A stretch of DNA of 64,000 nt from Eutreptiella sp. 'Long Island Sound 2002' (GCA_964036045.1 OZ038379.1:3348001-3412000); one strand, 5' to 3'. Numbered from the stretch's first letter, positions 1-25,433 are shown. Numbers and translations: made by a program. Notes: a model not told the origin generated them from the letters alone.

Positions 1-101
1 GTCCACTGTGCTGTCGGTGGTCGCGGGGGCTGAAGCCCACGGGTTCCGCTGGAGCTCTTGTGCTGGGAGGGCACAGAGGGGGTTGGGGTTGGGGCTATAG
101 T

Positions 102-214
102 TATGGGAACAACCAACAAGCCAATTGCCCTTCTGAACTCAATAGTTTGAAAATCTGTTGTACCTCTGCACTGCTAAGTGGTGTGTATGGCAGTGGGCTG
201 AACACTGGTGTTTT

Positions 215-251
<37 letters not shown>

Positions 252-723
252 GATAGTGGCAGGGGCAAAGGCCGATTAAAGTCCTTGACGCTGTGCGACG
301 GGTGAAGCGCGGGGGTTATGGGTCAGGGACTGGCTGCGCCGCCCCGCCCCCGCCCCCCGCCCACCCCTGGTGTCGCGGCGCGACGGAAGGACTGGGCGCC
401 AAGGGTCAGGTGTCCGCCCCCTCTGCCCTCCCATGGCCCCGTCGCAGGCTCCCCGAGCGCCCTGTGGGTGCCGGCGCGGCGCCCAACCCCTGCGAGCCCC
501 CCCCCCCCCCCCTCATCATCGTCGCTGCCCCTCCCCTTGGGGAGGGGGGGAGGACACGCATAGGCCCCCCATCCCAAATAGCGTGCGCTGCTATGGGAAC
601 AACCAACAAGCCAATTGCCCTTCTGATCTGAACAGTTTGAAAATTTGTTGTACCTCTGCACTGCTAAGTGGTGTGTATGGCAGTGAGCTAAACACTGGTG
701 TTTTGGGTGTGTGTGTGTGTGTG

Positions 724-801
<78 letters not shown>

Positions 802-1089
802 ATAGTGTCAGGGGCAAAGGCCGATTAAAGTCCAGGCCGATTAAAGTCCTGGACGTTGTGCGACGGGTTAAGCGAGGGGGTTATGGGTCAGGGACTGGCT
901 GCGCCGCCCCCACCCTTGGTGGCGCGGTGCAACGGAAGGACTGGGCACCCAGGGTCAAGTGTCCACCCCCTCTGCCCTCCCATGGCCCCGTCGCGGGCTC
1001 CCCGAGCGCCCTGTGGGCCGGTGCCGCGCCTGACCCCTGCGAGCCCCCCCACCATCATCGTCATCGCCGTCCCTCCCCTTGGGGGGGGG
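102..1089. repeat. Diverged tandem duplication (~102-549 and ~592-1089), each copy with a (GT)n tract
   Basis: TATGGGAACAACCAACAAGCCAATTGCCCTTCTGA starts at both 102 and 592, and the same downstream blocks follow in order. The GT tracts differ in length (217-248 vs 707-799). Confidence 0.85.
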
Positions 1090-2854
1090 ATGGGATGGGA
1101 TGGGAGTGTGTCCAACACCTGCCAGACACGTCGCTAGGCCGACCCTATGTGTCCGCGGCTTGTGCCGCAAGCTGCCGCGCGCTGGACTCGGAGCCACGCA
1201 AACCACCACTGACCCAGTCCGAGACCGGCGGGTGAAGTTTCCATACCCACACTCCTTGGGGACCCTGGTCGGCGTCACGTCCGGGGCTTCCGGCCCACAC
1301 TCACGCACACACACACACACCATGTCATTTCATGGTCCTGACCGGGGGGCATGGCGTGCCCCACGCAAAGCAGTCAGTGGAGTATCCACGCTCGCCCGCA
1401 AGCAGTGGCAGTCACTGCAGGTCCCACACCGTGCCGCGGCGGCTGAGGCACACAGGCGGCGGTGCACAATCCGAGACATGATGCACGAGGTCAAGGCTGA
1501 ACCACTAGACCACAGGACCACTAGACCACACCCTATCTCTCCATACCATTTCTTTCGGACACATGCGGACTTGCCCAGGCGGGGGTATAAGCCGCCACAG
1601 AATAAATGAATGAATGAACTAGACCACAGGACCAGGTCTGCAGGTATTGAGACTGGTGAGGTTTGCCAGAGGACATCACACTCACCGCGGCTCCAGGTGT
1701 GTAGCACTTGGTATGGTAGTGGTAGTGCTGCCCCATCCGGATCGCACCTTCCCCAGGGGAGGCATCCGCTAAGCGGTTCCTGGTGGTGGAGGCCCCCTTG
1801 GGGGGGGGGGGGGCACGCACAGGCCCCCCATCCCAAATAGCGTGCGCTGCCGCACACCTCCCGCCCCTGGCACCAATCGAGGGTGCCCCTCGTGGTGCCG
1901 GGAGCAGCAATGCCGCACACCCCGGTGCCCCCTGCATGACTTGCACGCGGGGGCCCTGTGCGCGTCGCACAGGGTCTGCATGGGGCGTTGCTGCCCTACC
2001 CTCCTCGTTCCCGCCCGCTGCGCCGGCGGTGGCAGGGGCAGCTGGGGGTCATGGCTGACGGGCGCCTGTGGCGCGTCTCCGTCCGGCGCCGGTGCGCCCG
2101 CGCCCGCGCCACGCGCCGGCTGCACCTCTGCGGCCTCTTGTGGGGGCAAAGGAGGGGAAGGGGGTAAAGGGAGGATGGAGGTAGGTGCCTCCTACATTGC
2201 GCTGTCTGTCCCACCTCCCTCCTCTTCTCCCGCGCGGTGCGGTGGGGGCGGGGGGGAGCCGGGCGGTGCCCGGGTCGCTGTCAGCGCGCCCGATATCGCA
2301 GAAAAAACGTTGCACATGGGACGCGCGTCCCCGGGCTCCGCCACTGAGGGCGGCGCTGCCACCGGGGGCGCCAGCGCCGGGGGGAGGGAGGGGGGGTGGT
2401 TCAGCTGCCCTCTCAGCCCCATCAACCCCGAGCCACCGAGGCTCTCCACCCGTACCGGGCGCCCCCCCCCCCTGCCGGGGCGCCCGCTGGATCCAAGTGG
2501 GGGGGGGCGCGGTGTTCCGTACCCAGGGCAGTCCGGCCGTTGTTGGCGGCCAGCCGCTGCCGGTGCCGGCGCCACGCAGGGGCACTTGGCTGGCGGCTCC
2601 GGTGGCGGCTCCGGGGGCACCAACCAAGCCTGCAGGACCCTTGACGAGGCCGCTGCCCCCGCCACTGCCACTGGGTGTCCCTCGTGACCCTGCGCGCAGC
2701 AGTGCGCCACTCCCCGCCGCACCAGCCGGCATTGCTCGCATTGCGGCTTCAGGTGGATGGGGCACAGGCAGCACGGTGCCGGCCTGACGTCCGCCGATGG
2801 CAGGCGCGGCCGAGCCACTCCCATTGCCCTCGGGCGCTGTGCGCTCACGATCTC

Positions 2855-3587
2855 TTACGGGCGCGCCAGGGCCCCCCCTCCCGGGCGGCGCGGCAAGTAC
2901 CCCGCCAGGAAATAGTCCTTGCAGCCGGCCCCTAGGGTCAACAGCCGGCACACCCAGAGCTCTAGGCAATGCTGCTGGAGCTGCTGCATGTGCTGCCGCA
3001 TGTCGGGCCGGCGCGCAAACACCGGCCGCTCCATACGCCCCATGCTGCGAAAGCCCCCCAGGGCTACCAGAGAGGCGCACAACCACCGGAAGTCGCCCTC
3101 CAGCAAGGTTCCGCCGCCGAGCAGGGGCTGCAGCAGGTCGACCACCTCCCGCAGCACGCGTGCCCGCTCCCTCGGCGGCACCACTTGTCGGGCGTGGCGA
3201 TGGCCCGGCCTGGCCGGGAGCGCCCGGTGGCCGTGGGACTCAAAGTCCAGGGCCAGCTCGGTGTAAGTGACCTGGCCTTAGCCCGGTGTCCACCATAGCG
3301 CCAAGGCCTGGTGCACCAGTGCCTCCGCAAAGCCGCGCTCCCACGGCCAGCCCGCCAGCGGGCCCCGCGGCAGCTGCAAGGGGGTCCCGCGTTGGGGCGG
3401 GGCGCAGCGGGCCGTCCGCCAGCTGCTCCCACCCGTACCCCTGTCGCGAATCCAGACCCCGCCCCCGTGCCGCGCCAAACACTGTGGAGGTCGCGCCCCC
3501 GCCTGACCGCGCCGCCTCCTCCGCCGCACGGCGGGCCAACAGCACGGCAAGGTACATGCCGTACAGCCGGTACAACAACCGCCCCGC
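2855..3587 (-). mobile_element. Frameshifted coding relic, probably the 3' part of a non-LTR retrotransposon ORF
   Basis: GC3-rich segments in two frames: LYRLYGMYLAVLLARRAAEEAAR...YGWEQL and YTELALDFESHGHRALPARP...RARVLREVVDLLQP...RPVFARRPDMRQHMQQLQQHC. Joining them needs a frameshift near 3270. The family assignment is an inference. Confidence 0.4.
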
Positions 3588-4050
3588 CTAGGCGTCCTCG
3601 CCCTCACCCACCATGCGAGCGGCAGCAATCCCGTGGCCCTCAGGCACACCGGCCATGCCGTCGGCAGTGCCAACGCCGGTAGCGCCCTGGCCTCCTACAG
3701 CACCCACGGCATCCATGCCCGGCGCGCCGATTCCCAGAGCGGGCGGTCCCACAAGATGTGTGTCTCCGTCTCCGGCGCCCCGCGATAGAAGGGGCACCCA
3801 TCTGACCGCGGAATGGCGTGCCCCGCCGCCCTGCCCGCCGTCCACGTGGCCCCGGCTAGCAGCCCCCGGAGGATGCTGCGCTCTCCCTCCGTGGAGGCCA
3901 CCTGCAGGCCCTCCCGGCTGGCCTGTCGGGGATAGTGGCAGGGGAAACCCGCATTATGTATAAGGAGGGACACAAGCATGGGTTAGTGGAGCCAGTACTC
4001 GTACGGGATATCCGGCCATTCTGAGTCCGGCAGTGTGTGTGGATTGCTAT

Positions 4051-4411
4051 AGTGGGAGTGGAAGGGGTAGTGGGAGTGGGAGTGGGAGTGGCAGTGGGAG
4101 TAGGGTTGGTAGTGGGGGTGGTAGTGGGGGTGGGGGTGATAGTGGTAGTGGTAGTGGTGGTGGGAGTGGTAGTGGAAGTGGTAATGGTAGTGGTAGTGGT
4201 AATGGTAGTGGTAGTGGTAGTGGTAGTGGTGGTGGTGGTGGTAGTGGTAGTGGTGGTGGTAGTGGTAGTGGTGGTGGTGGTGGTGGTGGTGGGAGTGGGA
4301 GTGGGAGCGGGAGTGGTAGTGGGGGTGGTGTTGGGAGTGGGAGTGGTGGTGGTAGTGGTCGTGGTAGTTGTAGTAGCGGTGTAGCGGTGTAGCGGTGTAG
4401 CGGTGTAGCGG
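4051..4411. repeat. Compound G-rich microsatellite (GGGAGT/GGTAGT/GGT mosaic) followed by (GTAGCGGT)x~4.5
   Basis: Directly visible. Confidence 0.95.
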
Positions 4412-5068
4412 CATAGCACAATCCTAGGACCACTGTTTGGCCCTAAGAACCAAACAGCAACGCTACACCGTCTCACCGCGGCGCACCTTGTGCTATGCAT
4501 GCATGCCAGTTGGTGGCTTTGGGTCATCATTGGTGGAGGTCACTGAGGCCAGCCGCCTCTGTGCATGACCTTTGACCTTGGTACACAAGCGGCACTGCAA
4601 GGGCTCTTGAACAGCTCGTCATAAACTGAGCTTTCCAGACTAGACGCACAGTATCGCTGATGATGCATTCGTGAAGCCCTAGCGCTTATTGTGCACATCT
4701 CGGCCTCAAGCTTCCGTAGTAAAGCCTCATGCTATCGCACGGGCACAATGTGCAACACACTAGCAGCCTATTGGCCACACCTCAGTTAAATCATGCACAT
4801 GCCCAAGGGCGCAGTCAAGCTTCCCAAACCATGTGCAAGATCTTGCGGTTGAACTTTTTCTGGTCTCCCCTGCTTGCACATGCTGATCACATCTCGACAT
4901 CGAGTTTCCTGGACCAGACCTTGATCCCGACAAAGGCCTACCATTCACACCTTTGGTCCGCTTGAGGCAAAAGGGCCTTACGCCACTCGACACAGCTACT
5001 AGCTACTGTATCCACTTGTTTGTAGCCCTGCCAGCAACCGTAAGGGGAAGGTGTCCCTGGGTGAGGTG

Positions 5069-5246
5069 TAGTGGTAACAGTAGTGGTAGTGGTAGTGGTG
5101 GTGGTGGTAGAATGGGTAGTGGCACTGGGAGTGGGAGTGGGTGTGGGAGTGGGAGTGGGAGTGGGAGTGGGAGTGGGAGTGGGAGTGAGAAGTGGTGGTG
5201 GGAGTGGGAGTGGAAGTGCTAGTGGTTGTGGTAGTGGTGGTGGTAA
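5069..5246. repeat. Second compound GGTAGT/GGGAGT microsatellite
   Basis: Directly visible, with the same units as 4051-4372. Confidence 0.9.
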
Positions 5247-5947
5247 TGAGGCTTGTTTCCAGTGATAATGGTCGTGGTGCTGGACTGTGGGATGCTCTCG
5301 TGTGGGCTCAGTTGTTGCCCAGCTCCAAAAAGGGGCGGGACTCAGGACCTGTCCACGGCGTCATTTTCGTTCTTAGCTCCCTCCTCTGGGAATCGCCCAC
5401 ACAACCGTCATGCAAATTACACGGCAGGCCCCCCTTCACCCAAATGGGCTGGTAGTGCAGTAAGGGGGTCTCCTTCAATGCCAAACTGTCTGCCCCCTAC
5501 AAAAGGGCCTAGTGCCACAAAATATCCGCCAACGGCTCCCTCCGCCATCAATTACCCCCCGACCGCCGTCAAGTCCCATCAAATGCCCATCAGTGACCCT
5601 TCCACTGCCGTCACTTACTCTCCTGACGCCGTCGGTAACCCTCCAACGACTGAACATTGGTGCATATGTACTGGATGGCAGTTGGAGGGGGATCGACGAC
5701 GGTTGGAGGGCGACCCACAGCGGTTGGAAGGTGAACAACGTCGGTCATCAAGGGCAGCGGGGAAGAGGGGGAGGGGGGGAGATCCCCACACCACGTCATC
5801 ACAACACCCGCACACCCCACCTGCCCCCTGCACTTCTCCCTACAGACCCCTCCTCCTCAAGCGCAGCCCATCTTCCCCCCTGTCCCATCCCCGTCCCCCC
5901 ACCTGCCCCCGTCCCCGCCCGCGACAGCCTCTCAGGCAACTGCACAC

Positions 5948-6828
5948 CTGCTCCACCGGGCGCGGGGCCCGCAGCGACGGCACCCACCCCCGATGCCGGT
6001 TCTCCGCCCGCACCCACTCCACCACCGCGGCCCTTGTGACGCCTGGCTCGCACTCCACCACCTCCCGCCACATCCCCAAGAGCTCTGCACCGCGGGGGTG
6101 GGGGGTCCGCTCGAACTGCGCCAGCAGCACCTCCACGGCCTCAGGAGACAGGCCCCAGTGGTGCGGCGCAACCGCCCGCCGCCAGAACCACGCGTCCACG
6201 GCCTCACGGTGCGAGCGGAACTCCTGCCCATCGGGGGAGCAGAACACGAGGCCCCCAGTCGCCGCGTGCGCCTGCGCCGCGCCGCACGGCCCGGGGCCGT
6301 GTCGGGGCGGTGCCGCGTCGTCGTGGGCCCCAGCCGCTGGCCGCACGTGCCACTCGTCAACGGCGGCCACGCCGAGCCGCCGGGCGGTGCGCACCAGCCG
6401 CTCCAGAGCCACACGGCGAACGCCGTCCGCGTCCAGGTCCGCCTGGTCCGCCCGCTTCATCCGCAGCCGGGGCCTCTTCACTCGCCCCCCGTTCTCGGCC
6501 TTGACTCTGCCCGGCGCCCCCGAGGGAGGGCTGCTCCCGGGCTCGGGCTTTGGCGCGGGCGCTCCGGCAGTGTCTTCGGGGGGCACGCCGTCCTCCGGCT
6601 TGACGCCTCGCGGTGCGGGCGCAGGGGCAGTGCTCCTGGGCTCCGGCTTTAGTGCAGGTGCTTGGGCGGGGCCCTCAGGGGGCACCGCCGGCTCTGTCTG
6701 TGGGGCTCCGCCGTCGCACTCGGACTTGAGCAGCAGCGCGGGACGTGAGGGATCGTCGTGGGGGGGTGGCCCCGATGCGGTGGTGGGGCTGTCGCAGACC
6801 TGCACCTCCTCCTCGTCCTCATCCTTGA
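5948..6828 (-). CDS. Internal exon (881 nt) of a putative chromatin protein: psi-K-x-E-rich linker + MBD-like domain + divergent homeodomain
   Basis: Polypyrimidine acceptor ...cctcctctgccgcag|TC AAG GAT and donor GAG CAG|GTGTGC, open frame throughout. MBD-like motif: EWHVRP...LVFCSPDGQEFRSHREAVDAW. Homeodomain-like motif: LSPEAVEVLLAQFERTPHPRGAELLGMWREVVECEPGVTRAAVVEWVRAENRHR. Other exons were not located. Confidence 0.7.
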
Positions 6829-9779
6829 CTGCGGCAGAGGAGGCGAGGAGGGCCGGACGTTGTGAGGGAAGTGCACAGGCCCCAACACCCGAGACACCCA
6901 TAAAAGAAATGGGGGGACTGGGGGATGGGGGGTTGGAGCTGGTGCTGGAGCTGGAGCTTCCGTCCCGCCCATCGCAGAGGGCGGACCCCATGCCTGCGGT
7001 CCACACGGGAGGCCTTGTCAGGCTTCGGGAGGAGATTATTTGCGACTGCATCCGCCGGGTCACACATGATCCGAAGAGGCAACCGACGGCAGCGAGCGCC
7101 CAACCGATGGCAGTTGGCGTTGGCCCGGCAGTGTTCAAGGCGCAGGGCCACAAATGGTCAGGGGTGCTTTCTGCAATCGGCCCCCGCCGCGCCTGCCACA
7201 CCATCGTCTTCACTGCCCTTCACGCCAATTCACGTGTTCAAATTCGTGTTCCAGTTGGTACAGTTCATTGGCTGCGGTTCAGGATTGCAAACAGGAACAA
7301 ATTGGGGCGGGGGAGGGGGTCGGTGTCCAGAAAGACGGGAAATCAGAGGTGCAGAGACTGGAGGCCTCGGTCGCTTTTGCACATGGACTCAGAGCGTCGC
7401 ACACCCACAGGGCTGTGGTGACGCTTTCATTTACAGTGCCCATGGGGGGACCCATTGCCCCATTGAGTGCGGCGGTGTACTGAAGGGGCCCATTTCCACA
7501 CTTGTATCGTCTCTACGGCCGTTTGGGGCGAAAGATAGCTGTTTGGCCCAACACTGTGCTGATTTGGGGGGGCACAGTTAGATAGCCGTCTGCAGCGCAG
7601 ACTGTGGGACTTTGCGCTGCGCTAAACGTCGTGCAGCCAGTCACTCCCAAACTGCTGGTGACACCACAAAGTACAAAGACTGTGCATAGGCCAGGGCAAC
7701 GCACACTGTTTGAGTGTCGGCAGCAGCCGTGCACCCACATCGAGCGGCACAATGCAGGCGGCCCCTATTTCCGGTATCCACCTCAGACGGGAGGGGCAGG
7801 CCATACAATGTCCCAGGCGGAGTAACGCACTTGTGTCGGAGTGACACAATTTTTTCATAGCAACGCGCTTGTTCGGGCGTGAAATGCTTGTCCCGGAGCC
7901 AGACACTTGGGCACTTGTGCTGCAGTGATGCATATGGTGCAGTGCATGGGCTGCCTGCAGTGAATCTGGTATGAATTGCCTTGGGTCTTATTCTGACGGA
8001 GGTTTCTGATGGAGGGCAGATGTTCAGGGGGGGCGGAGGGCCCGATTTTGGGTTTGAAATCCCCACAAATGATAATGTAAATCCGATGAGCAGTCGACTC
8101 ACCCTCCCACCCTGAAAGCCTTCACTCTTATGGCGTGTTGGTAGTTGCCTCAGAATTACAGAAAAAATGGGGCTGACCAAGCCCCCGTCCCATTGCAGCA
8201 GGTGGTCCCGGAATGAGCAGCATGAGGGGCATGGAGGTTTAAGTAAGAGATCCGCAACTGTATTCCCAGGCGATGGCCCCACGAAGCTTTACGGTGCCCG
8301 GCACTTCCAGAGCCCGCCTATTTGCCAAATACATATTCTGTTCTGATGAGTATCGCACTGCTCAGCACATTTTTTGACGCCGAAAAACCAGTGCCTGGCT
8401 TCAACTGGGGCCCAGGATGCCATCGTTGAGTTTTGAGCATAGGGGTCTTCAGCAAAACCAGCCCCGAAATGTGCTGTCGTTGTTGGTGTGTGCTTAGCAC
8501 GCACTGTTTCCGGCAGAGAGTAATGCTTGAAGCATCCCAGTTCCGGGGAGGCAGTGCCCTCCAGAGATCGTGAGGGCTGAGGCAGGGCCAGCCCCAGTGT
8601 GCTCTTGTATCTTTCTTGAGCCTTTAGGAAAGGAGGAGAGACAAAAGCATCAAACTGCAACATTTTGGGTATTGTGGGGGGTAGAAAAGGGGTGGGGGCC
8701 TCAAGCCCCCTTCATTTATGTGGTGGGGCGTGACAATGTGATGTCCCGAAGGGATGAGAGGACTGGGAAGGCGTCCTTCTTTGGCAAGCGGATGAGAAAC
8801 AGGTTTGGGTGCCGGGGGGGGGGGGGGTTCAAGCCCCGGTTCCAGGCTGCCACACCCTTCAGGGGGACCAAGAAGAAGAAGGCCGGTTAGGGCCTGCGCT
8901 TGAAGGGGGGTGTTGTAACTTCCCTCCCAACAAACGGGACTAGCTGGCAGTTCCGCCCCAACCGCTTCTGTCCGTCCCCCATTGCCCTCCAACCGCTTTG
9001 CAACCGCCAGCACCGCTACTGAAACCGCCTCTCAACCGCCAGCAACCGCTCTTGCAACCGCTTTTGGGAACTTCTCATCAGCCACTCTCCTCCCCAAGCG
9101 CAGCGCTGGTCAGGGGAGGGGGGGGGGGGGGGGGAATGGTACTCGAACATACTCCCATCAAAATGATCCCCGTGAGGCGGTGGTCATTTTGAGGCATCTG
9201 TTGGCAATTGCTGTCCTCTGGGCCCCCTTGTAAACCGGGTTTTGAGCCGTCACCAGCCGTCACCAGACGGCCTGTTGACAAGGGTTGGTCACGTGCTTGC
9301 GTATTGTGTTGTTGGTTGTTGCTGTCTGGATTTGAGGGGAGAGAGGTGGGCAAGGATGCGTCTGAATGCTCATGCACCCCCCATATGCGCTCCGGTAATC
9401 ACGAGAAACAATGCAGTACGGCCGGATGAGTGTCATTGGTATCGCCCATGCCTTGGCATGTGCCCGTGTCCGAGGCCCTCACACGGCCACAGAGATGCCC
9501 GGCCCCATCCAGCACAGATTGCCTCCGTGGGCGTCCTCCAGTGCCGGCACAGACTTTCTCGAGGGGCGGTTTCCTCCAATCCGCTGGGCGCAAACCTGGC
9601 GCGCTGCGGCACAGATTATCTCCAGTGGACTACAGGTGTTTCCCAGGTGCCCCTCAGTAATATCCGCCCCCGTCCCGTCCAACTCAGTAGGATTCAGCTG
9701 CCAATGAGCCTACATCTACATCTACACACGCACCTGCACATGCACCTGCACGCTGACATGAGGACCGATCGACTACCCT

Positions 9780-10200
9780 TGTCCCCCCTTGCAAACTCCC
9801 GGGTTAGCGCGTGACGGTCTCCCGGGTGGGGGGGGGAGACGGTCGCCAAGTGACGGCCTCCCGGGGGGGGGGGGGGGAGATTGCAAGGGTATCTCAAGGC
9901 AAACTGTGGTACCCTCCACCGATGCAAGCAAAGAGAACACGTGTGAAGCGACTTTCGCATTGATGCGGTGCCAATGTGTTTCATCCAACACTAATGTTAT
10001 TGAGGATCCAAAGGAACGGTGAAGAACTTCTGGGTACGAGAATAACACACTTTGAAAAAATGGGAAAGCAATGCAAGGCCATGCGTAAACCAGATGGGCA
10101 ACACAAACCAGCACAATACATGCTAACTAGAAAAACATGGAAGTGACGGTCTCCCGGGTGGGGGGGGGAGATTGCAAGGGGGGGGAGTTTGCAAGGGGGG
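9780..10200. repeat. Clustered GTGACGGTCTCCC...GGGAGATTGCAAGGGG motifs (dispersed repeat, probable element ends)
   Basis: The motif recurs at ~9812, ~9851 and ~10143. Related copies lie at ~55010-55050 (reverse) and ~55586-55655. Confidence 0.6.
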
Positions 10201-10249
10201 GACAGGGTACAATGCAGCACAAATACCTGAGAAGAGGGTGGCACTGCGC

Positions 10250-10720
10250 AGGACCGCAGCCAAGTGCCTCTCTTGCTCCTCAAGCTTCATCGACTTCCTC
10301 GGGCCCTCGTCCGAGAACGCTTCCCAGTACTTCCGTTTGTACGGGCCATCGCTGCTGTCATCGGACGATGTGACGTCCTCCTCGACAACGATGGCCTGCT
10401 CGGATCGTCGTCCTCTCTCACGCCACATGCCATGGCTCAGTGCGGTGCTTGAGCTCGAACTGCTGCTCCGTGCGGTCTGGAGCGGTTGCAGAGACATTTG
10501 GATGGCGAATTGGAGTTCTTCATCCGAACTGTTCTCATCGCCACTTACGATTTCCACGGGCTCCGAGGCAGATACTCCAGAGGATTCGGGCACCATGGCT
10601 TTAGAACAGGTGCCACATTGCGGCACAGCACTGCGATATGCAGAAACGTCGAACAGACAGTGGCTAATTCAGGCGCAGATGAGCAGCAGACAGAGAATGC
10701 CGATTACGCAGAAGGTTTTG
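10250..10720 (-). pseudogene. Frameshifted RING-like finger followed by SIM-like and UIM motifs
   Basis: UIM SSDEELQFAIQMSLQ (~10486-10535). SIM-like PVEIVSGDE and AIVVEEDV. Upstream Cys motifs SVCC / RFCISQCC / PQCGTC are spread over three frames. Confidence 0.45.
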
Positions 10721-12717: not shown

Positions 12718-12860
12718 TTAACAAACAACATTGGTCCCACAAGTGTGGGTGTCAATACATTCATTACAATAGTGCTCCTTACACTCATCACAAACTGCAA
12801 CGGTGGAGCGCCGTTGGCAACACAACACACACACTTCCGCCTCATCCTCTACCTCATCTT
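12718..12860 (-). CDS. B-box-like zinc finger coding segment ending in a stop codon (gene context unresolved)
   Basis: DEVEDEAEVCVLCCQRRSTVAVCDECKEHYCNECIDTHTC: CxxC...CxxC-x4-CxxC-x3-H spacing. Confidence 0.4.
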
Positions 12861-13114
12861 GCGTGGCGGCCGAGTAGCTTTGGTCAGTCCATACCTGAGG
12901 CGGGACATGCTCCCATGGTCCGTAGGGGGGGTGACGGACTTGCCTCCGGATGCAAAACTGTGTGAAATGCAACAAAATGCGGACTGACTGGTGCAACTCA
13001 TTGGGGCCGCCACGCCAGATGTTCCTAACCAAACCCCAATGCCACAACCGAGCAAACAGCTGCTCAATGTGTGCCCTGTACCACCCATGCACATCATTGT
13101 AACATTGTTGGCGG

Positions 13115-13529
13115 GCATTCTCGGGGGTCCCCAACAAAGGGGACAAAATCAGAAGTCAAAACCTACGCTGGGGGTCACCATGATGCTCCACGCAACAAAT
13201 CGTGGATTCAAAGATTGTCCCGGTTTCCTCAATAGCACCGGAAGGTTGGGGCCCAAAAGAGGGCGGAAATGCTACGTCACCCCTGCATTCTCGGGGGTCC
13301 CCAACAAAGGGGACAAAATCAGAAGTCAAAACCTACGCTGGGGGTCACCATGATGCTCCACGCAACAAATCGTGGATTCAAAGATTGTCCCGGTTTCCTC
13401 AATAGCACCGGAAGGTTGGGGCCCAAAAGAGGGCGGAAATGCTACGTCACCCCTGCATTCTCGGGGGTCCCCAACAAAGGGGACAAAATCAGAAGTCAAA
13501 ACCTACGCTAGGGGTCACCATGATGCTCC
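13115..13529. repeat. 170-bp tandem repeat, ~2.4 copies
   Basis: GCATTCTCGGGGGTCCCCAAC starts at 13115, 13285 and 13455. Copies are essentially identical. Confidence 0.95.
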
Positions 13530-16790: not shown

Positions 16791-19732
16791 TGCCTCATAC
16801 CCCCCCCCCCTGCCCTCGTCCGTACTCCTCAAGGTGGGGTTGGCAGATTGGGCACCCTCTGGGGGTCATTCTATCTCAACCCAAGCCCCCCTACTCCATA
16901 TACATTGTGTGGCAATTCAAGGCCAATTCCCCTTACTTGATTGCTCCACGTGCCAAAGCCCAAGAGACAATCTATGTTGCGCAATACGGCCCCTGTGATC
17001 GGCTGAAGATTCCGAATTTGTAGAAGAGACCTACCCTCAGTACCCCTACGCACACCCTCTCTCCCTGGGCTTTTGCAGCAGGATGCACTTTGGCTGACAG
17101 TGGGCTTTTGCTGAGAGGCACACCAGTCAGTCAGCAGGTGACAGTTAGCAGCCCGCAGACTCAGGCTTTCAAGAATGCGTCGCCCTCTCACAAATGATGA
17201 AGAGAAGGTGCTAAGGGCAGGTCCCCTCTTTGCCCACATGGGCAGCCATGTTGGCTACCCTGTGCACCGGCGCAGTATCCCGACAAGGACTCTGAAAGGA
17301 TGGCGACCACGCTTGAACAACGCAAACACGTGGGGCATCCAGGTCTGGGAATGGCATCGTGTGCATATTGTGTTCACATATTTGCCCCCACTTGAATGAT
17401 GGTCCCACGATTGCAGCTACTATGATTCTTCCTATGGGGCGCCAGTCAAATACCATGACACCTGTAAGCAGAGAAGAATACATGAATGATTCAACGCTAC
17501 TCCAAATAAAGAAAGCAAGAAAGAAGCCCGGCAGCCAAGCATGCCCGCCTTTCAACTCCTTTCCAACCTTCTGGAGAGTAAAAGCCTACAACACCACAGT
17601 TCCAACTGAGTGGTATTGTGAGCAGATCAACCAAGACAGGCCTATCCCCATATTCCCATATTTGTCCGGTGTCCCTTTTGTTTTCCTTGGAACCCTATCG
17701 GATATTGCAGAAAGATAGGTGGTTGCTGATGATAGGTTGACGGCCGGTCAGTATGCCGGTTTTCTGCTCTACTGTGCTCACTCCTGATTATTCTCGTTTC
17801 TTTTGTGTGCCTACATAGTCGCACCGGGTGCACCCACGTTAATTTTGGGGCCTCCTACCTGTCCTTGTCGGACAGCCCAATGATGCAGTCAGACACATGG
17901 CTAATTATGTACACCACCATTGCCCCTAGGAACACGAATGTCTTCGCGGTTAAATCCCCTTGCCAGTTGCAGCTGTGCATGTACCACCATAGCAACCTGT
18001 TGAATACAACTGCCAAGCGAAGGCTGCCACCACTCTCATGGCTACGCACTGGCTTCTCCAAGCAGGCTGGACCAGGTTTTTGGGGTGGTCCACCCCATCT
18101 GTGGTCGACTCAGAGAGTGGGAACAGGTACACAGGCGTCTCAGACCATATCTGTCAAGCACGGCGTTGTCTAATTACAGTGGTCTGTTTTGCTGACCACA
18201 CTTTTCATGCACTTTTCAAAAATGTAAGATGATCGATGTGTGTACCCATTGTACTCACAATGAAAGGTTGGGTGATGCATGTGAGAACAGTTTGTGCTGG
18301 GGACAACATTTTGCTGTGGAATCCAATCTATTGCTATCTGTCTTAATGTGCTTTGCAGCCATGGCCACTGTTGCTATCCCCCATTGTGTGTTGTCACGTG
18401 CCCCGCACAATCATACGCTGCTGGCAATCAAGGACACACTCAAATTATCCCTTAACTGTCATGCGGCTGACGATACCAAGTGATCGAGGAGGGGCTTTGG
18501 CCATTATTTGTTGTGGAAACTATTCACCTACGCAAAAGAAAAGGATTCATGGAGCAGCTGCTCTCAAGTACCATCTCTCAATGTACATGGAATCCCATGC
18601 AAATTTGACGGCAACCGGAAGATATTGCACGGCGCTTCTGCCGCAATCACCATTTCGTATGCAGCGGAACATGTCGAATGGAGAGCGGGAGAAACCCAAA
18701 TACCGCAATGGCACTGCACGTTACTGCTACTGATAACCGGTGCCGCTGGCTGCCCCCCATGGCTGCAGGCAGATGATTGGCTGGGGTGCCGCAGAACTGC
18801 CAGGGTTTCGTGTGCTGGAAGTGGCGGGAGGACGCTTGCGCTGCTGGCTTCTCCGGCTGCGCTCAACGGATCCCGTGCGGTGTCCTGAATGTGTGGTCAT
18901 CGCAGCCATGTGCCAGGTGAGTTGAAGCTGTGCAAAGCACAGTATCGTGTTGTCCAGGGCAAGGATCGTACGCACCGCCTGCTGCACTGCACAATCGTCC
19001 CCTCTCTCCTTTCGGCCGTTTCCATCTGTCCGTATTTGGATTCCCCTGCACCTGCCGTTGACATCCCTGTCCGTGTCTCGTTCACTCGGTGATGAGGACA
19101 CCTGTGCGGATGGATGTTCTCTAACCCGATGCCGCGTGCGAATCTTCCGTGTCAGAAAGAGCCAGGGGTTGCTATGCAAATAAGGCGTTGTCTGAAGCCC
19201 TCTGGTTGGCTTCCGAGTTGTGTGCGTGCGTGGGGTTGAAGACTGGCCTCCCCCGCCGCCATCCATTGCCGGTGCGTCAAATCGCGCTGGGCCGTGCGTC
19301 TGAGTGGGAGAGGAATTGGATGCCTCTGTGGAGCAGGGAAGCGGCGAGCACACCGTAAACGTGCTGTACATCACCGGGGGTGCACATATTAGTGGGGCTG
19401 GCGCATGTTGCTGGATGCGTGGAATATGCTCACAGGCCTTCGGGTGCACAAGTGGCAGGAGGCAGGGCGTGTGCAGTGGAGGCCTGAGTGTGAAACCACC
19501 TGGAGATGTACCCCGTCATCGACGACTGGCGTCCCACAACCCGCCAAGAACCAAACCAAGGGATTAAAAAGCATGTTCCGCGAGCTGGAAGGGTTCTCTG
19601 GGCTCCAATGTACCCATTTCAAACCAGCAATTTTCTGTCCCGTCAAAAAGAGTCATGAGACCCTCTTTCAAAAAGACGCCCCTTGTTGTTTCAGGGACCA
19701 ATAAACAAAACGGGCAGAGAAAAAGGTATCCT

Positions 19733-22064: not shown

Positions 22065-25000
22065 ACAGCAAAATAGAAATGCTGTTGGCGGCTTGTCTTT
22101 CCGCTTGCGATGCAACTTGCAAGCGTGACCGCGCCGCGCCGGGTGCCGTCGGAAAATCGCGCAAAAAGATGCTGGTCTTTTTCAGCCTCACTCCGATACC
22201 CGGGCGTACCACTCAGCCGTGTGTTCCCCTCACTGGCGGCCGCGACAGGTTTTGGCTGCTCCGTTGCCGGCCTGGCCCCGTACCCTGTTCCTTCGGCCCC
22301 AAGACCCCGGCAGCTACCCGCCGGGACCAGTGGACACAGTCGCCTTGAGTGGGGCACAGCCTCAGCGTGGCGGGCACGGGCGTGAGAAGCGAGCCATCGA
22401 ATTCCAGCACCTTGTAGTCCCTCGCATGAGTTACAGGTAATCGCGACTTACCCGGACATTACGATAGGGTGGATTTCTGCTCTTGGGGCTCAGCGAACTT
22501 GTTTGAAGTAATATTGTGGTTCTTGGCACCGCTCCTGCTCCAATAATCGCATGCGCGTAAATGTTCCACCGCAATTTGCACAAAAAATGGTGCAGCCTTG
22601 TCGAAAAAATGTTGGCATTCGCTGATTTACAACTTGAAATTCTGTGCATATTTTCCAGAATGATATTCTGGTTCTGCCCAAATCACCGGGAAAAAATGCA
22701 AACAGCTGCCGCAAGACATTTGTAGGGTGCAAGGGCGGAGGTTCGACGCGCAATATTGCCAACCATCTCCGACAACGCATATCCATTGTTCAATTTGGAG
22801 CCTTCATTCCGATTTTGGTTGTGGTATGAAAAATGTGCACCCGTTCAATCCTTGCCTTTCGTTGGTACCTTGACAACTCGCACTTATTGTGTCATGGTGG
22901 TTTTACACTCTCTTCATGTGCACATCATATCACAACAAATGAGTATGACCTCTTCGGCTTTATGTCCGTGTACTGTACAAGGTGCGGAAAGGGTCGCCGA
23001 AAAATGGACAAACCAGCAAACGACCATAGTGCGTGTAGGGGCAAGTGGGAGGCTATCATGGGGAGGTGCGGTGCCTTAGGTAGTGCCCCATGTCAAGGGA
23101 TGACACAAATTGCATACCTTTGCAGTTTGGGTGGTTCCTACGACAACGCCGCTTGCAAACGAGAGGCAGGGCAAGACTCACGACAACATCCCATGTTGGA
23201 TAGCCGTGGCCCTCGAGTTCTACATTTCCATATTGGTAAGAATGAAAGATGGTAGGCTGTAGGCGGATGACGAAGAAAAGCAAAAAAACGACAAAACAAT
23301 GTTCGGCCGTAACTTACGATGTGTAAATTTTGGGCGTGCAAGTTACGTAACTTACACCCTAACTTACGACGTAGTTACGTTTGTAAGTTACGTTGCAATC
23401 CAAGGGGAGACCCGAGGGGTTCGTGGCAGTGATCCGTCAGTTATGGATCAATGAAGCAAGCTTTGTCTTCTTTTGATGGGCATGAGAACACAACATGCTC
23501 GCTGACATATTGAGACATCTCCGAGGTCACCATACATCGTACGTTGACATGGGAGTAACATGGCAAACACATTCGTGAGCATACGATGAGATGGCGCTCA
23601 TGGGAGAGTGTTTGGGACCATGTCACTGTTGTTGACTTCGACGCCAAGGGGAAGGCCAAGACTGTGAAATGCAACCACTACGACTACGGAAAGGCGGCAA
23701 ACCACACTCGCACCTTGCAAATTCTGTCTCCTCACTTGCAACTTTGGGAAGGTGGTAGGTTTTGGCTCTCCCATGGGGAAACACAAAAGGTGCCAACAAC
23801 TCCTTAGGATTGGTGCGCGCTGCCAACCCCCCCCGCCCGCCCTCTTTGCAAAAGCGGGAAAAAAGTCATTTTTGGCAAAATCACATGGTTTTGGGGAACA
23901 TGCGTAGTGCACCTAGCAAGTGGTGGGGGGGTTGCCCAAAAGCGATCCGAATCGGTTTGAATATGTTAGGTAGTCGGGGGGACTAGCATTGCAACGCCGT
24001 AACTTATGCCGTAACTTACCAAAACTACGTAATTTTTGGCGACGACTTTCAACCTCGTTGCAAATTGCCCCCCCTAAGGAAACCGAGAAGTCGCTCCATT
24101 TGCACATACGGTGAGTGGCGCATGGACCGCGTGCGCACAAAAAATGGTGGTGGCAGGGGAGTCCTCCATCGCATGGCATGACAAGAGAACATCGCATGGC
24201 ATGACGAGGGAACGGCATCGCACAAGAAGAGGGGAATGGGGAAGCGGAGCTCAAAACGCTCATGCATGACTCACACGAATTTCAAGTTAAACTGATTTAA
24301 ACACGGCTTCACCATCCACGACAAAATTCTTTTCCACACTATCATGCGATGTACCCATGGCATCACGTCTTCTCATGCCCTTGCACCACCCGACATAGTG
24401 TTGGAGACATTAAGAACAAGCATCCACCAACGACGCCACACACCAAAGGATTTGATAAAGAAGCACTTTCCCGGCCAACCATGTGTTTGGCCAACTTCAC
24501 AAAACAACAGTTTTGCTCCTTTGCTGCTTGGGCTGGCACATTTCTACGCTGCTTGCACAAGGGAGCGGGGATGCCTCTACTCCGCATGTTTGGCCAACTC
24601 TCCCGTTGTTGTGTCCTCAGGTAAATTACCCACCATCTCTGAGGCTTCCGTAGATGAGCCCCAATAGCAGGTTTGGGTAGATGAGCCCCAATATGCACAA
24701 GCGTGAGTTGCCGGGGATTGGGTTGCCGGAGATGGTTGGCAATATTGCGCGTCGAACCTCCGCCCTTGCACCCTACAAATGTCTTGCGGCAGCTGTTTGC
24801 ATTTTTTCCCGGTGATTTGGGCAGAACCAGAATATCATTCTGGAAAATATGCACAGAATTTCAAGTTGTAAATCAGCGAATGCCAACATTTTTTCGACAA
24901 GGCTGCACCATTTTTTGTGCAAATTGCGGTGGAACATTTACGCGCATGCGATTATTGGAGCAGGAGCGGTGCCAAGAACCACAATATTACTTCAAACAAG

Positions 25001-25433
25001 TTCGCTGAGCCCCAAGAGCAGAAATCCACCCTATCGTAATGTCCGGGTAAGTCGCGATTACCTGTAACTCATGCGAGGGACTACAAGGTGCTGGAATTCG
25101 ATGGCTCGCTTCTCACGCCCGTGCCCGCCACGCTGAGGCTGTGCCCCACTCAAGGCGACTGTGTCCACTGGTCCCGGCGGGTAGCTGCCGGGGTCTTGGG
25201 GCCGAAGGAACAGGGTACGGGGCCAGGCCGGCAACGGAGCAGCCAAAACCTGTCGCGGCCGCCAGTGAGGGGAACACACGGCTGAGTGGTACGCCCGGGT
25301 ATCGGAGTGAGGCTGAAAAAGACCAGCATCTTTTTGCGCGATTTTCCGACGGCACCCGGCGCGGCGCGGTCACGCTTGCAAGTTGCATCGCAAGCGGAAA
25401 GACAAGCCGCCAACAGCATTTCTATTTTGCTGT
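22065..25433. mobile_element. Foldback structure: ~712-bp inverted repeats (22065-22776 / 24722-25433) enclosing hAT-like BED-finger relics
   Basis: Identical ORFs on opposite strands (e.g. 22213-22410(-) = 25088-25285(+); 22431-22649(-) = 24849-25067(+)). The inner end of each arm encodes KTFVGCKGGGSTRNIANHLR, resembling a BED-finger C-terminus. Confidence 0.8.
23586..23730 (+). mobile_element. Degenerate BED zinc finger (hAT-type transposase N-terminus relic)
   Basis: SVWDHVTVVDFDAKGKAKTVKCNHYDYGKAANHTR, flanked by GTAACTTAC-rich subterminal-like repeats at ~23305-23395 and ~23995-24035. Confidence 0.55.

Follow-up and report, generated by a model that had tools for sequence, protein, structure and literature searches.

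Degenerate reader-like modules in an expressed Eutreptiella exon that probably heads a large SF2 ATPase gene

Background

Can an exon whose product recalls two families of DNA-binding domains be taken for part of a reader of modified DNA, and to what kind of protein does it belong? The question is raised by an open segment on the minus strand of a stretch of 64,000 nucleotides of the Eutreptiella sp. genome (hereafter the window, at its full length). A reading made from the sequence alone had proposed that this segment encodes an MBD-like domain fused directly to a degenerate homeodomain, that the product might recognize modified bases (5mC or base J) and that it might be an accessory subunit of ISWI, i.e. 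a hybrid of BAZ2 and RLT. To our knowledge, almost nothing is known about euglenid readers of 5mC or base J and about euglenid chromatin remodelling, and the gene described here provides a concrete, expressed candidate for mark reading or remodelling in this group.

By comparing the locus with RNA and DNA contigs, with family and structure databases and with the one relative that could be detected, we arrive at a different picture, namely, that the gene probably encodes a large ATPase of superfamily SF2 (SNF2/ResIII-like) with a long N-terminal accessory region of degenerate reader-like modules. The protein looks chromatin- or DNA-associated, and its modules resemble MBD and homeobox domains too faintly, and in too degenerate a form, for the label 'reader of modified DNA'.

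Results and discussion

Expression, splicing and copy number of the exon

The segment in question is exon 2 of the gene model, of which the following parts lie within the window (a slash marks a splice joint here and below):

Exon 1, 10227..10596, minus strand: 370 nt (123 codons + 1 nt), from the first in-frame ATG (10596, preceded by a TGA) to the donor CAG/GTATTT
Intron 1, 6829..10226, minus strand: 3.4 kb, GT..AG, RNA joint; contains a high-copy repeat at about 8790-9190
Exon 2, 5948..6828, minus strand: 881 nt, 293 codons; RNA contigs across both ends; open frame with coding-type GC at codon positions 1, 2 and 3
Pro/Ala/Glu-rich low-complexity linker in exon 2, 6470..6828, minus strand: about 120 residues with 28 Pro (by composition); not kept in the relative
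Basic patch KRPRLRMKR in exon 2, 6452..6478, minus strand: NLS-like as judged from its sequence
Intron 2, 5' part, 1..5947, minus strand: about 6.45 kb in total, with the acceptor 506 nt beyond the window start; microsatellites and repeats

The open frame around exon 2 extends over 5843..7213 of the minus strand, and direct reading of the translation confirmed the motifs at the sites where they had first been described. Contigs of four public runs, i.e. three DNA runs of the same organism and one estuary metatranscriptome, were aligned to window positions 3389-9388. Two short contigs of the metatranscriptome form the basis for expression. The first follows the window over 6714-6831 and continues with 33 letters that are unique in the window and lie at 10230-10259, with 0 mismatches; the exon 1 donor at this joint is CAG/GTATTT at 10227 and the exon 2 acceptor is CCGCAG/ before 6828. 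The second follows the window over 6003-5947, again with 0 mismatches, and continues with 105 other letters. Thirty of these were searched for in the window, where they are absent, and were found at positions 17408-17437 of the adjoining sequence L001, directly 3' of TTTGCAG/ and 506 nt beyond the window start, so that the contig leaves the window at 5947 and arrives at L001:17407. Here the exon 2 donor is CAG/GTGTGC after 5948, with TTTGCAG/ as the acceptor of exon 3. The reading frame is open through both joints. The proposal of a single coding exon bordered by 6828 and 5948 is thus borne out by RNA that crosses both splice sites without mismatch.

DNA contigs from the three runs are colinear across 5251-8972 at the depth of unique sequence, and tblastn over about 100 kb of sequence found no second copy of exon 2. 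For these reasons the segment is not a multi-copy transposon ORF, an outcome that the original proposal had itself envisaged. Exon 2 is expressed, spliced at 6828 and 5948, and present in a single copy.

The opposite strand of the same DNA holds an open frame of 722 codons (5253-7421, plus strand), without a family match and with a non-coding GC pattern. This frame is accordingly an artefact of GC-rich DNA, and in this genome the length of an ORF means little by itself. The existence of so long a frame could suggest that exon 2 itself is no coding exon but a chance open frame of the same origin. Exon 2, however, is spliced in frame at both ends, its codon-position GC (0.82/0.59/0.85) is coding-like and the same as that of the other exons of the gene, and it has a relative at the protein level (E 3e-8 to 5e-8). 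The RNA joints and the collinear relative rule the chance frame out, and we assign it a negligible probability.

Gene model and downstream helicase exons

The first in-frame ATG of the model lies in exon 1, which also encodes a short motif:

Candidate UIM (ubiquitin-interaction motif) DEELQFAIQMSLQ, 10486..10524, minus strand: Pfam UIM

Against Pfam UIM (PF02809) the motif DEELQFAIQMSLQ reaches E 0.0012 and 18.9 bits, slightly below the cut-off of 21, and it agrees with the UIM pattern of an acidic run followed by hydrophobic-x-x-Ala-x-x-x-Ser. A spliced-leader pattern was searched for in the window and is absent there.

The exons beyond the window were read on contig ena:ERZ25074135:ctg9567_39x_l (456,663 nt), which was reached via an ORF product (P0001) of the same DNA. 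An in-frame GT..AG pair connects exon 3 to an acidic exon (GCTG/GTGTGC at L001:17855, CTCAG/ at L003:1926). Further downstream and on the same strand, the SF2 motifs GSGKS, STPQN, DESH, SGTP, KHFVYSS and QATGRAVR follow each other in order. Motif I lies within GCLYWWTPGSGKS, motif Ia is VVSTPQN, motif II is IIDESHELFN, motif III is LLSGTPG, motif IV is KHFVYSS, and motif VI, QATGRAVR, is followed by a coiled coil. Assignment to superfamily SF2 rests on this ordered series on one strand and on its conservation in the relative. Exon-by-exon scans of the helicase pieces gave SWI2_SNF2 at E 0.047, DEAD at 0.043, Helicase_C at 0.23 and a PHROG DNA helicase at 0.0046; the weak matches of the downstream exons are helicases throughout, and the single scores are low because the exons were scanned apart. 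The SNF2_N model did not match, with only SWI2_SNF2 (PF18766) responding at E 0.047 (window gene) and 0.32, and neither the scans of any exon piece against Pfam, NCBIfam and PHROGs nor a comparison of the helicase exons with solved helicases gave a significant match.

It is, on balance, likely that exon 2 and the neighbouring SF2 helicase belong to one gene, mainly because the order of modules is collinear with that of the relative. The RNA covers the first two joints (exon 1-2 and exon 2-3), and the connection of exon 3 to the helicase follows from strand, frame and the architecture of the relative; the exons after exon 3 are accordingly presented here as inferred parts of the same mRNA. The gene would then span some 26 kb of the minus strand as a single-copy, expressed unit, beginning at window position 10596 and ending about 15.7 kb past the window start.

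A single compact relative

Exon 2, the exon of motifs II-III and that of motifs V-VI served as queries of a word-index search. It returned self matches and, for the third query, one relative (P0007), which is 64% identical over motifs V-VI. It is encoded on a metagenome scaffold of 4,539 nt (ena:ERZ23498659, scaffold_37342; hereafter L004) and matches Helicase_C at E 1.7e-4 (22.2 bits, against a cut-off of 23.5). When all open pieces of L004 were compared by tblastn with the merged contig, seven collinear matches on one strand were obtained (E 3e-8 to 1e-36), which extend from the three-helix module of exon 2 (window 6133..5933, E 3e-8) over motifs I, Ia, II, III and IV to motifs V-VI (E 1e-36). 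The order of modules in L004, i.e. small alpha/beta module, three-helix module, winged-helix-like module, acidic run, SF2 ATPase and coiled coil, is the same as in the window gene, packed into about 3.9 kb with short introns. Upstream of its three-helix piece, L004 carries LPDGWGVRE..GRRCFCAPAGG..LFRT between two helices, the first of them conserved; between that piece and the ATPase it encodes an exon 3-like piece (..KRTFVQV..) and the acidic run. The three-helix modules of the two genes are 29-31% identical (E 3e-8 to 5e-8). Since both modules of exon 2 are conserved in L004, they would seem to be real domains, though degenerate ones.

L004 has the features of a eukaryotic nuclear gene, with GT..AG introns of about 50-160 nt and a GC content of 61%; its intron after the three-helix module lies at most 5 codons from the position of intron 2 of the window gene.

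The search for relatives covered 5.8 billion sequences at 90% identity (length-limited word search) and 1.84 billion at 50% identity (full search). In a phmmer search of the latter representatives, the 174-residue domain region had no true homologue: three matches, to bacterial repeat proteins, Ig-like and beta-propeller, were rejected as spurious sums of SPDG-type turns. No further relative was found among 2.9 million viral contigs (searched with a single exon and a 2-sequence profile) or in JGI metagenomes, and two protein-language-model look-ups came back blank. The searched clusters stand for roughly 15 billion proteins, and among these the gene has a single detectable relative.

The alpha/beta module

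The first of the two modules of exon 2 comprises the following elements:

Small alpha/beta module, 6176..6418, minus strand: helix, W strand, insert, hairpin, helix; about 60 residues
N-terminal helix, 6371-6418, minus strand: AlphaFold secondary structure
W strand DEWHVRP, 6338-6358, minus strand: exon translation
Ala/Pro/Gly insert of 24 residues, 6257-6328, minus strand: exon translation
FCSPDG..FRS hairpin GGLVFCSPDGQEFRS, 6212-6256, minus strand: exon translation
Helix SHREAVDAWFWRR after the hairpin, 6176-6214, minus strand: exon translation

L004 shares the N-terminal helix, the W.VR strand and FC[SA]P.G with the window gene, and its module does without the 24-residue Ala/Pro insert. 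MAFFT misplaces this insert and the FRS/FRT register, and the FRT of the relative comes into register with FRS only with a 3-residue gap.

AlphaFold2 without an alignment modelled exon 2 residues 249-422 at a mean pLDDT of 47.5. This low-confidence model places a strand-strand-strand-helix order at the MBD-like part, with elements H14-31, E41-44, E74-77 and H87-99 at pLDDT of about 50-59. In a Foldseek search of the PDB with this poor model, about half of the top 50 chains are MBDs, all at E 2 or worse; the best such row has E 2.1 and a TM of 0.31 by target, and the local rmsd of the MBD alignments is 0.9-2.4 A over 20-26 residues. As these chains belong to one family, they count as one weak match rather than many. 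A structure-only search (VIA-align) with the same poor model listed no MBD at Z 2 or more and no homeodomain, while dsRBDs appeared at Z 3.3-3.5 and other small alpha/beta folds at about 3.5. At the sequence level, Pfam gave no match for exon 2 at E up to 10; the MBD model (PF01429) matched neither the ORF nor its 87-residue piece nor the insert-free piece of the relative at E up to 10, and phmmer against the PDB listed no solved MBD for either homologue. The best PDB sequence matches of the insert-free module are WW domains (Su(dx), YAP1, SMURF2 and NEDD4-2, E 0.17-1.5), and its spacing from W to the aromatic residue is exactly that of WW domains. A small beta-rich module is present at the place where an MBD had been read, but its identity as an MBD is not supported, with no HMM match and Foldseek MBD rows at E 2 or worse; the MBD fold, a three- or four-stranded sheet packed on one helix, is at most suggested by the model at pLDDT 47.

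MBDs such as those of MBD1 and MeCP2 contact mCpG through two Arg fingers, an Asp and a Tyr. Alignment of GLVFCSPDGQEFRS by eye with these residues leaves only the Arg of FRS in place, with Gly for the Asp and Val for the Tyr. In MBDs about 18 residues separate W from F; here the distance from Trp to the aromatic strand is 12 residues (L004) or 36 (window), and we know of no MBD with a helix ahead of its strands. The window copy has a net charge of +3, to which its C-terminal half contributes 0, and the copy of the relative one of -3, so that neither has the basic DNA-binding surface of an MBD. An MBD-superfamily fold for this module is possible at somewhat less than even chances; a working 5mC pocket would be far less probable still. 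Reading of 5mC or base J by the predicted modules is likewise disfavoured, in view of a pocket that has lost its Asp and Tyr and of a net charge that is about 0 or negative.

The three-helix module

The second module follows directly:

Three-helix homeodomain-like module, 5984..6157, minus strand: about 65 residues; predicted helices
Helices 1, 2 and 3, 6107-6148, 6047-6094 and 5984-6037, minus strand: AlphaFold H109-121, H125-140 and H146-160, pLDDT 51-57
WVRAEN in helix 3, 5999-6016, minus strand: exon translation

The sole match of exon 2 in a phmmer search of the PDB at E up to 10 is the homeodomain of POU6F1 (E 0.22), which a 2-sequence profile finds again at E 0.2. Pfam Homeodomain (PF00046) does not match the window copy and matches the copy of the relative at 12.8 bits (E 0.11, positions 13-52 of 57), as against a gathering threshold of 22.9 bits. 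Both copies conserve an F..R.P.P loop after helix 1, as is typical of homeodomains, and E-P-x-V-T before helix 3. Relative to the 60-residue homeodomain both have 5 extra residues before helix 3, a feature that occurs in atypical homeodomains. Searches with the exon models (Foldseek against the PDB, a second look with VIA and a wide VIA search) returned nothing significant.

Helix 3 reads W-V-R-A-E-N in the window and Y-F-E-E-E-R in the relative. Set against the homeodomain residues W48, F49, N51 and R53 (Antennapedia numbering), the positions of Asn51 and Arg53 are occupied by Ala/Glu and by shifted Asn/Arg; the loss of Asn51 noticed at the outset is therefore real, holds for both homologues and extends to Arg53. 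The helix is acidic in both (WVRAENRHR, YFEEERKQR), with one Glu conserved between them, and the net charge of the module is -2 and 0 in the two homologues. A homeodomain-like fold is plausible and, in our view, probable. Membership of the homeodomain family is not supported, and canonical homeodomain DNA reading is unlikely. Of the proposed succession of an MBD-like part and a homeodomain, the arrangement stands, with a three-helix module directly after a beta-rich one, and the name homeodomain is not supported, given that no homeodomain model is significant.

The missing Asp and Tyr of the mCpG pocket, the missing Asn51 and Arg53 and the non-basic character of the modules therefore make contact with proteins or nucleosomes the more likely predicted role for exon 2, in preference to sequence- or modification-specific reading of DNA.

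Exon 3 and the question of an ISWI partner

Exon 3 was modelled by AlphaFold2 without an alignment at a pLDDT of 43.3. The corresponding piece of L004 matches HARE-HTH (PF05066) at 13.4 bits (E 0.1, positions 13-71 of 71; threshold 25.9 bits), and exon 3 of the window gene itself does not match that model. We regard exon 3 as a winged-helix-like, possibly a HARE-HTH, module. All modules of exons 2 and 3 stay below the curated family thresholds.

DDT and WHIM were looked for in exon 3, in the acidic exon and in every ORF of L004 between the three-helix module and the ATPase, and found in none of these. The idea of an ISWI accessory subunit that combines BAZ2 and RLT is accordingly wrong: an SF2 ATPase follows in the downstream exons, as it does in the compact relative, and none of the pieces scanned holds DDT or WHIM.

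Alternative readings

Several other readings of the modules and of the motor deserve consideration. We hold it improbable that exon 2 encodes a true MBD and a degenerate homeodomain which read 5mC or base J, be it in a BAZ2/RLT-like accessory subunit of ISWI or as the head that targets the ATPase. This reading gains from F-C-[SA]-P-x-G ... F-R-[ST] plus helix, with W-x-V-R ahead, being kept between homologues of about 30% identity, from the share of MBDs (about half) among the top 50 Foldseek chains and from the two independent weak homeodomain matches; it loses by the lack of any MBD HMM match for either homologue at E up to 10, by Foldseek values of E 2 or worse throughout with no MBD at Z 2 or more in the structure-only alignments, by the Gly and Val that stand (by eye) for the Asp and Tyr of the pocket, by W-to-F distances of 12 (L004) and 36 (window) instead of about 18, and by a net charge of -3 to +3 together with the absence of DDT and WHIM from every exon scanned and from L004. 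Its further arguments come from other organisms: plant HB1/RLT likewise have a homeodomain with HARE-HTH after it (PMC8536118), Euglena possesses base J (PMC3141245) as well as DNMT1/2/4/5 (PMC7463849), and JBP1 recognizes base J by means of an acidic residue of its HTH recognition helix (PMC3141245), to which the conserved Glu of helix 3 may be compared. Carried to its extreme, this line of thought yields a euglenid-restricted motor whose degenerate MBD-like/HTH/winged-helix head reads base J or its precursor hmU via that acidic residue, in the manner of Asp525 of JBP1, with the UIM adding input from ubiquitylated chromatin. We give this version very little credence; if true, the head would make the protein a J-guided remodeller unrelated to JBP1-3.

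A family-level chance resemblance, which we think rather unlikely, would turn the alpha/beta module into a WW-like, a dsRBD-like (alpha-beta-beta-beta-alpha) or an AP2/integrase-like domain, the three-helix module into a generic contact bundle and the S-x-x-E of 'FRSHRE' into a helix-capping box after a strand. The WW domains that head the matches of the relative (E 0.17-1.5), the dsRBDs at Z 3.3-3.5, the conserved helix before the strands (not known from MBDs), the spurious matches to bacterial repeat proteins produced by SPDG-type turns and the acidic helix 3 of both homologues are all in keeping with it; the second Trp and the Pro of WW domains are absent, however, both weak sequence matches of the three-helix module are homeodomains rather than members of unrelated families, and the F..R.P.P loop is homeodomain-typical. 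As to the motor, the helicase part could be a captured gene of a giant virus (NPH-I or D6/D11-like) that later gained introns and host reader modules. The wording of DESHELFN, SGTPG and QATGRAVR, the last followed by a hydrophobic ..IY strand, resembles that family, and the family of the window gene is nearly absent from cellular databases; yet no relative came from the 2.9 million viral contigs (single exon, 2-sequence profile), no poxvirus or NPH-I family of Pfam matched, and both known members have spliceosomal introns. Such an origin, which seems to us improbable, is compatible with the explanation as an SF2 ATPase and does not exclude it.

The predicted protein and known systems

Under the preferred explanation as an SF2 ATPase with an N-terminal accessory region, the encoded protein would have roughly 1,300-1,500 residues, in the order UIM (exon 1), Pro/Ala-rich linker, NLS-like patch, alpha/beta and three-helix modules (exon 2), winged-helix-like module (exon 3), acidic run, helicase motifs I-VI and C-terminal coiled coil. 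The SF2 motor may translocate on DNA or remodel chromatin, with the N-terminal modules targeting or regulating it; the UIM might engage chromatin or repair factors that are ubiquitylated, the small modules might engage DNA, the nucleosome or partner proteins, and the coiled coil would serve pairing. An SF2 motor combined with a candidate ubiquitin motif and three small modules that resemble nucleic-acid readers is an architecture of which no earlier description is known to us. Should these modules turn out to do no more than contact proteins, they would still show how far a reader fold may decay under conservation.

The nearest functional parallel is provided by the SNF2-like ATPases of the SMARCAD1/Fun30 type, which carry N-terminal ubiquitin-binding and DNA-binding modules. 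The window gene resembles them in having a candidate ubiquitin motif and small modules N-terminal to an SF2 motor (DExH, SGTP-type motif III, QxxGRxxR motif VI), and both probably follow the principle of a translocase that is directed to its targets; it differs in lacking a match to SNF2_N, in its candidate UIM where they have a CUE, in its other accessory modules and in a family of which two members are detectable. With the helicases of poxviruses and giant viruses (NPH-I, D6/D11-like) it shares a similar wording of motifs and, behind motif VI, a short conserved strand, whereas its introns and its eukaryote-type N-terminal modules set it apart, and no viral relative was found.

The JBP2 protein of kinetoplastids combines a thymidine hydroxylase with an SNF2 ATPase. 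The window gene likewise has a euglenozoan SF2 motor, and its acidic recognition helix within a helix-turn-helix recalls JBP1, which reads base J through such a residue (PMC3141245); unlike these proteins it has no hydroxylase domain and no detected sequence similarity to DB-JBP1. A link to base J, which has been found in Euglena (PMC3141245) alongside DNMT1/2/4/5 (PMC7463849), would be pure speculation.

BAZ2A/B and plant MBD9 combine MBD/TAM with DDT, WHIM, PHD and bromodomain (10.1101/404152, PMC8600091). A degenerate MBD-like module for which no need of 5mC is expected, in a context of chromatin remodelling, is common to them and the window gene, whereas the latter is without DDT, WHIM, PHD and bromodomain, has its own ATPase in place of an ISWI partner and holds an MBD only as a candidate. 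Plant HB1/RLT and chlorophyte HDZ1 have a homeodomain, HARE-HTH and DDT (PMC8536118, citing Aravind and Iyer 2012); the succession of a homeodomain-like module and a HARE-HTH-like winged helix, separated from the rest by low-complexity linkers, recurs here, but with both modules below threshold (E about 0.1), without Asn51/Arg53, without DDT and with an SF2 motor following.

Repeats and RNA genes of the window

Both introns contain high-copy repeats, at 8789-9188 (intron 1) and 4389-4988 (intron 2), where summed contig depth rises to 800-2300 from about 10 in the flanks and many contigs run on into unlike sequence. Microsatellites of (ACC/GGT)n-like and (GT/AC)n type occupy 3990-4420 and 5000-5250 in intron 2, and L001 17070-17280 just before exon 3. 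By eye, 12721-13155 (minus strand, upstream of exon 1) and 2858-3277 (minus strand, in intron 2) look transposase- or retroelement-like and the ORF at 1772-2191 transposon-like; none of the three ORFs matched Pfam at E 0.01. Elsewhere in the window there is an inverted pair of full-length SRP RNA genes, about 2.6 kb apart:

SRP RNA gene, 22164-22456, minus strand: Rfam Metazoa_SRP, 133.6 bits
SRP RNA gene, 25042-25334, plus strand: Rfam Metazoa_SRP, 133.6 bits
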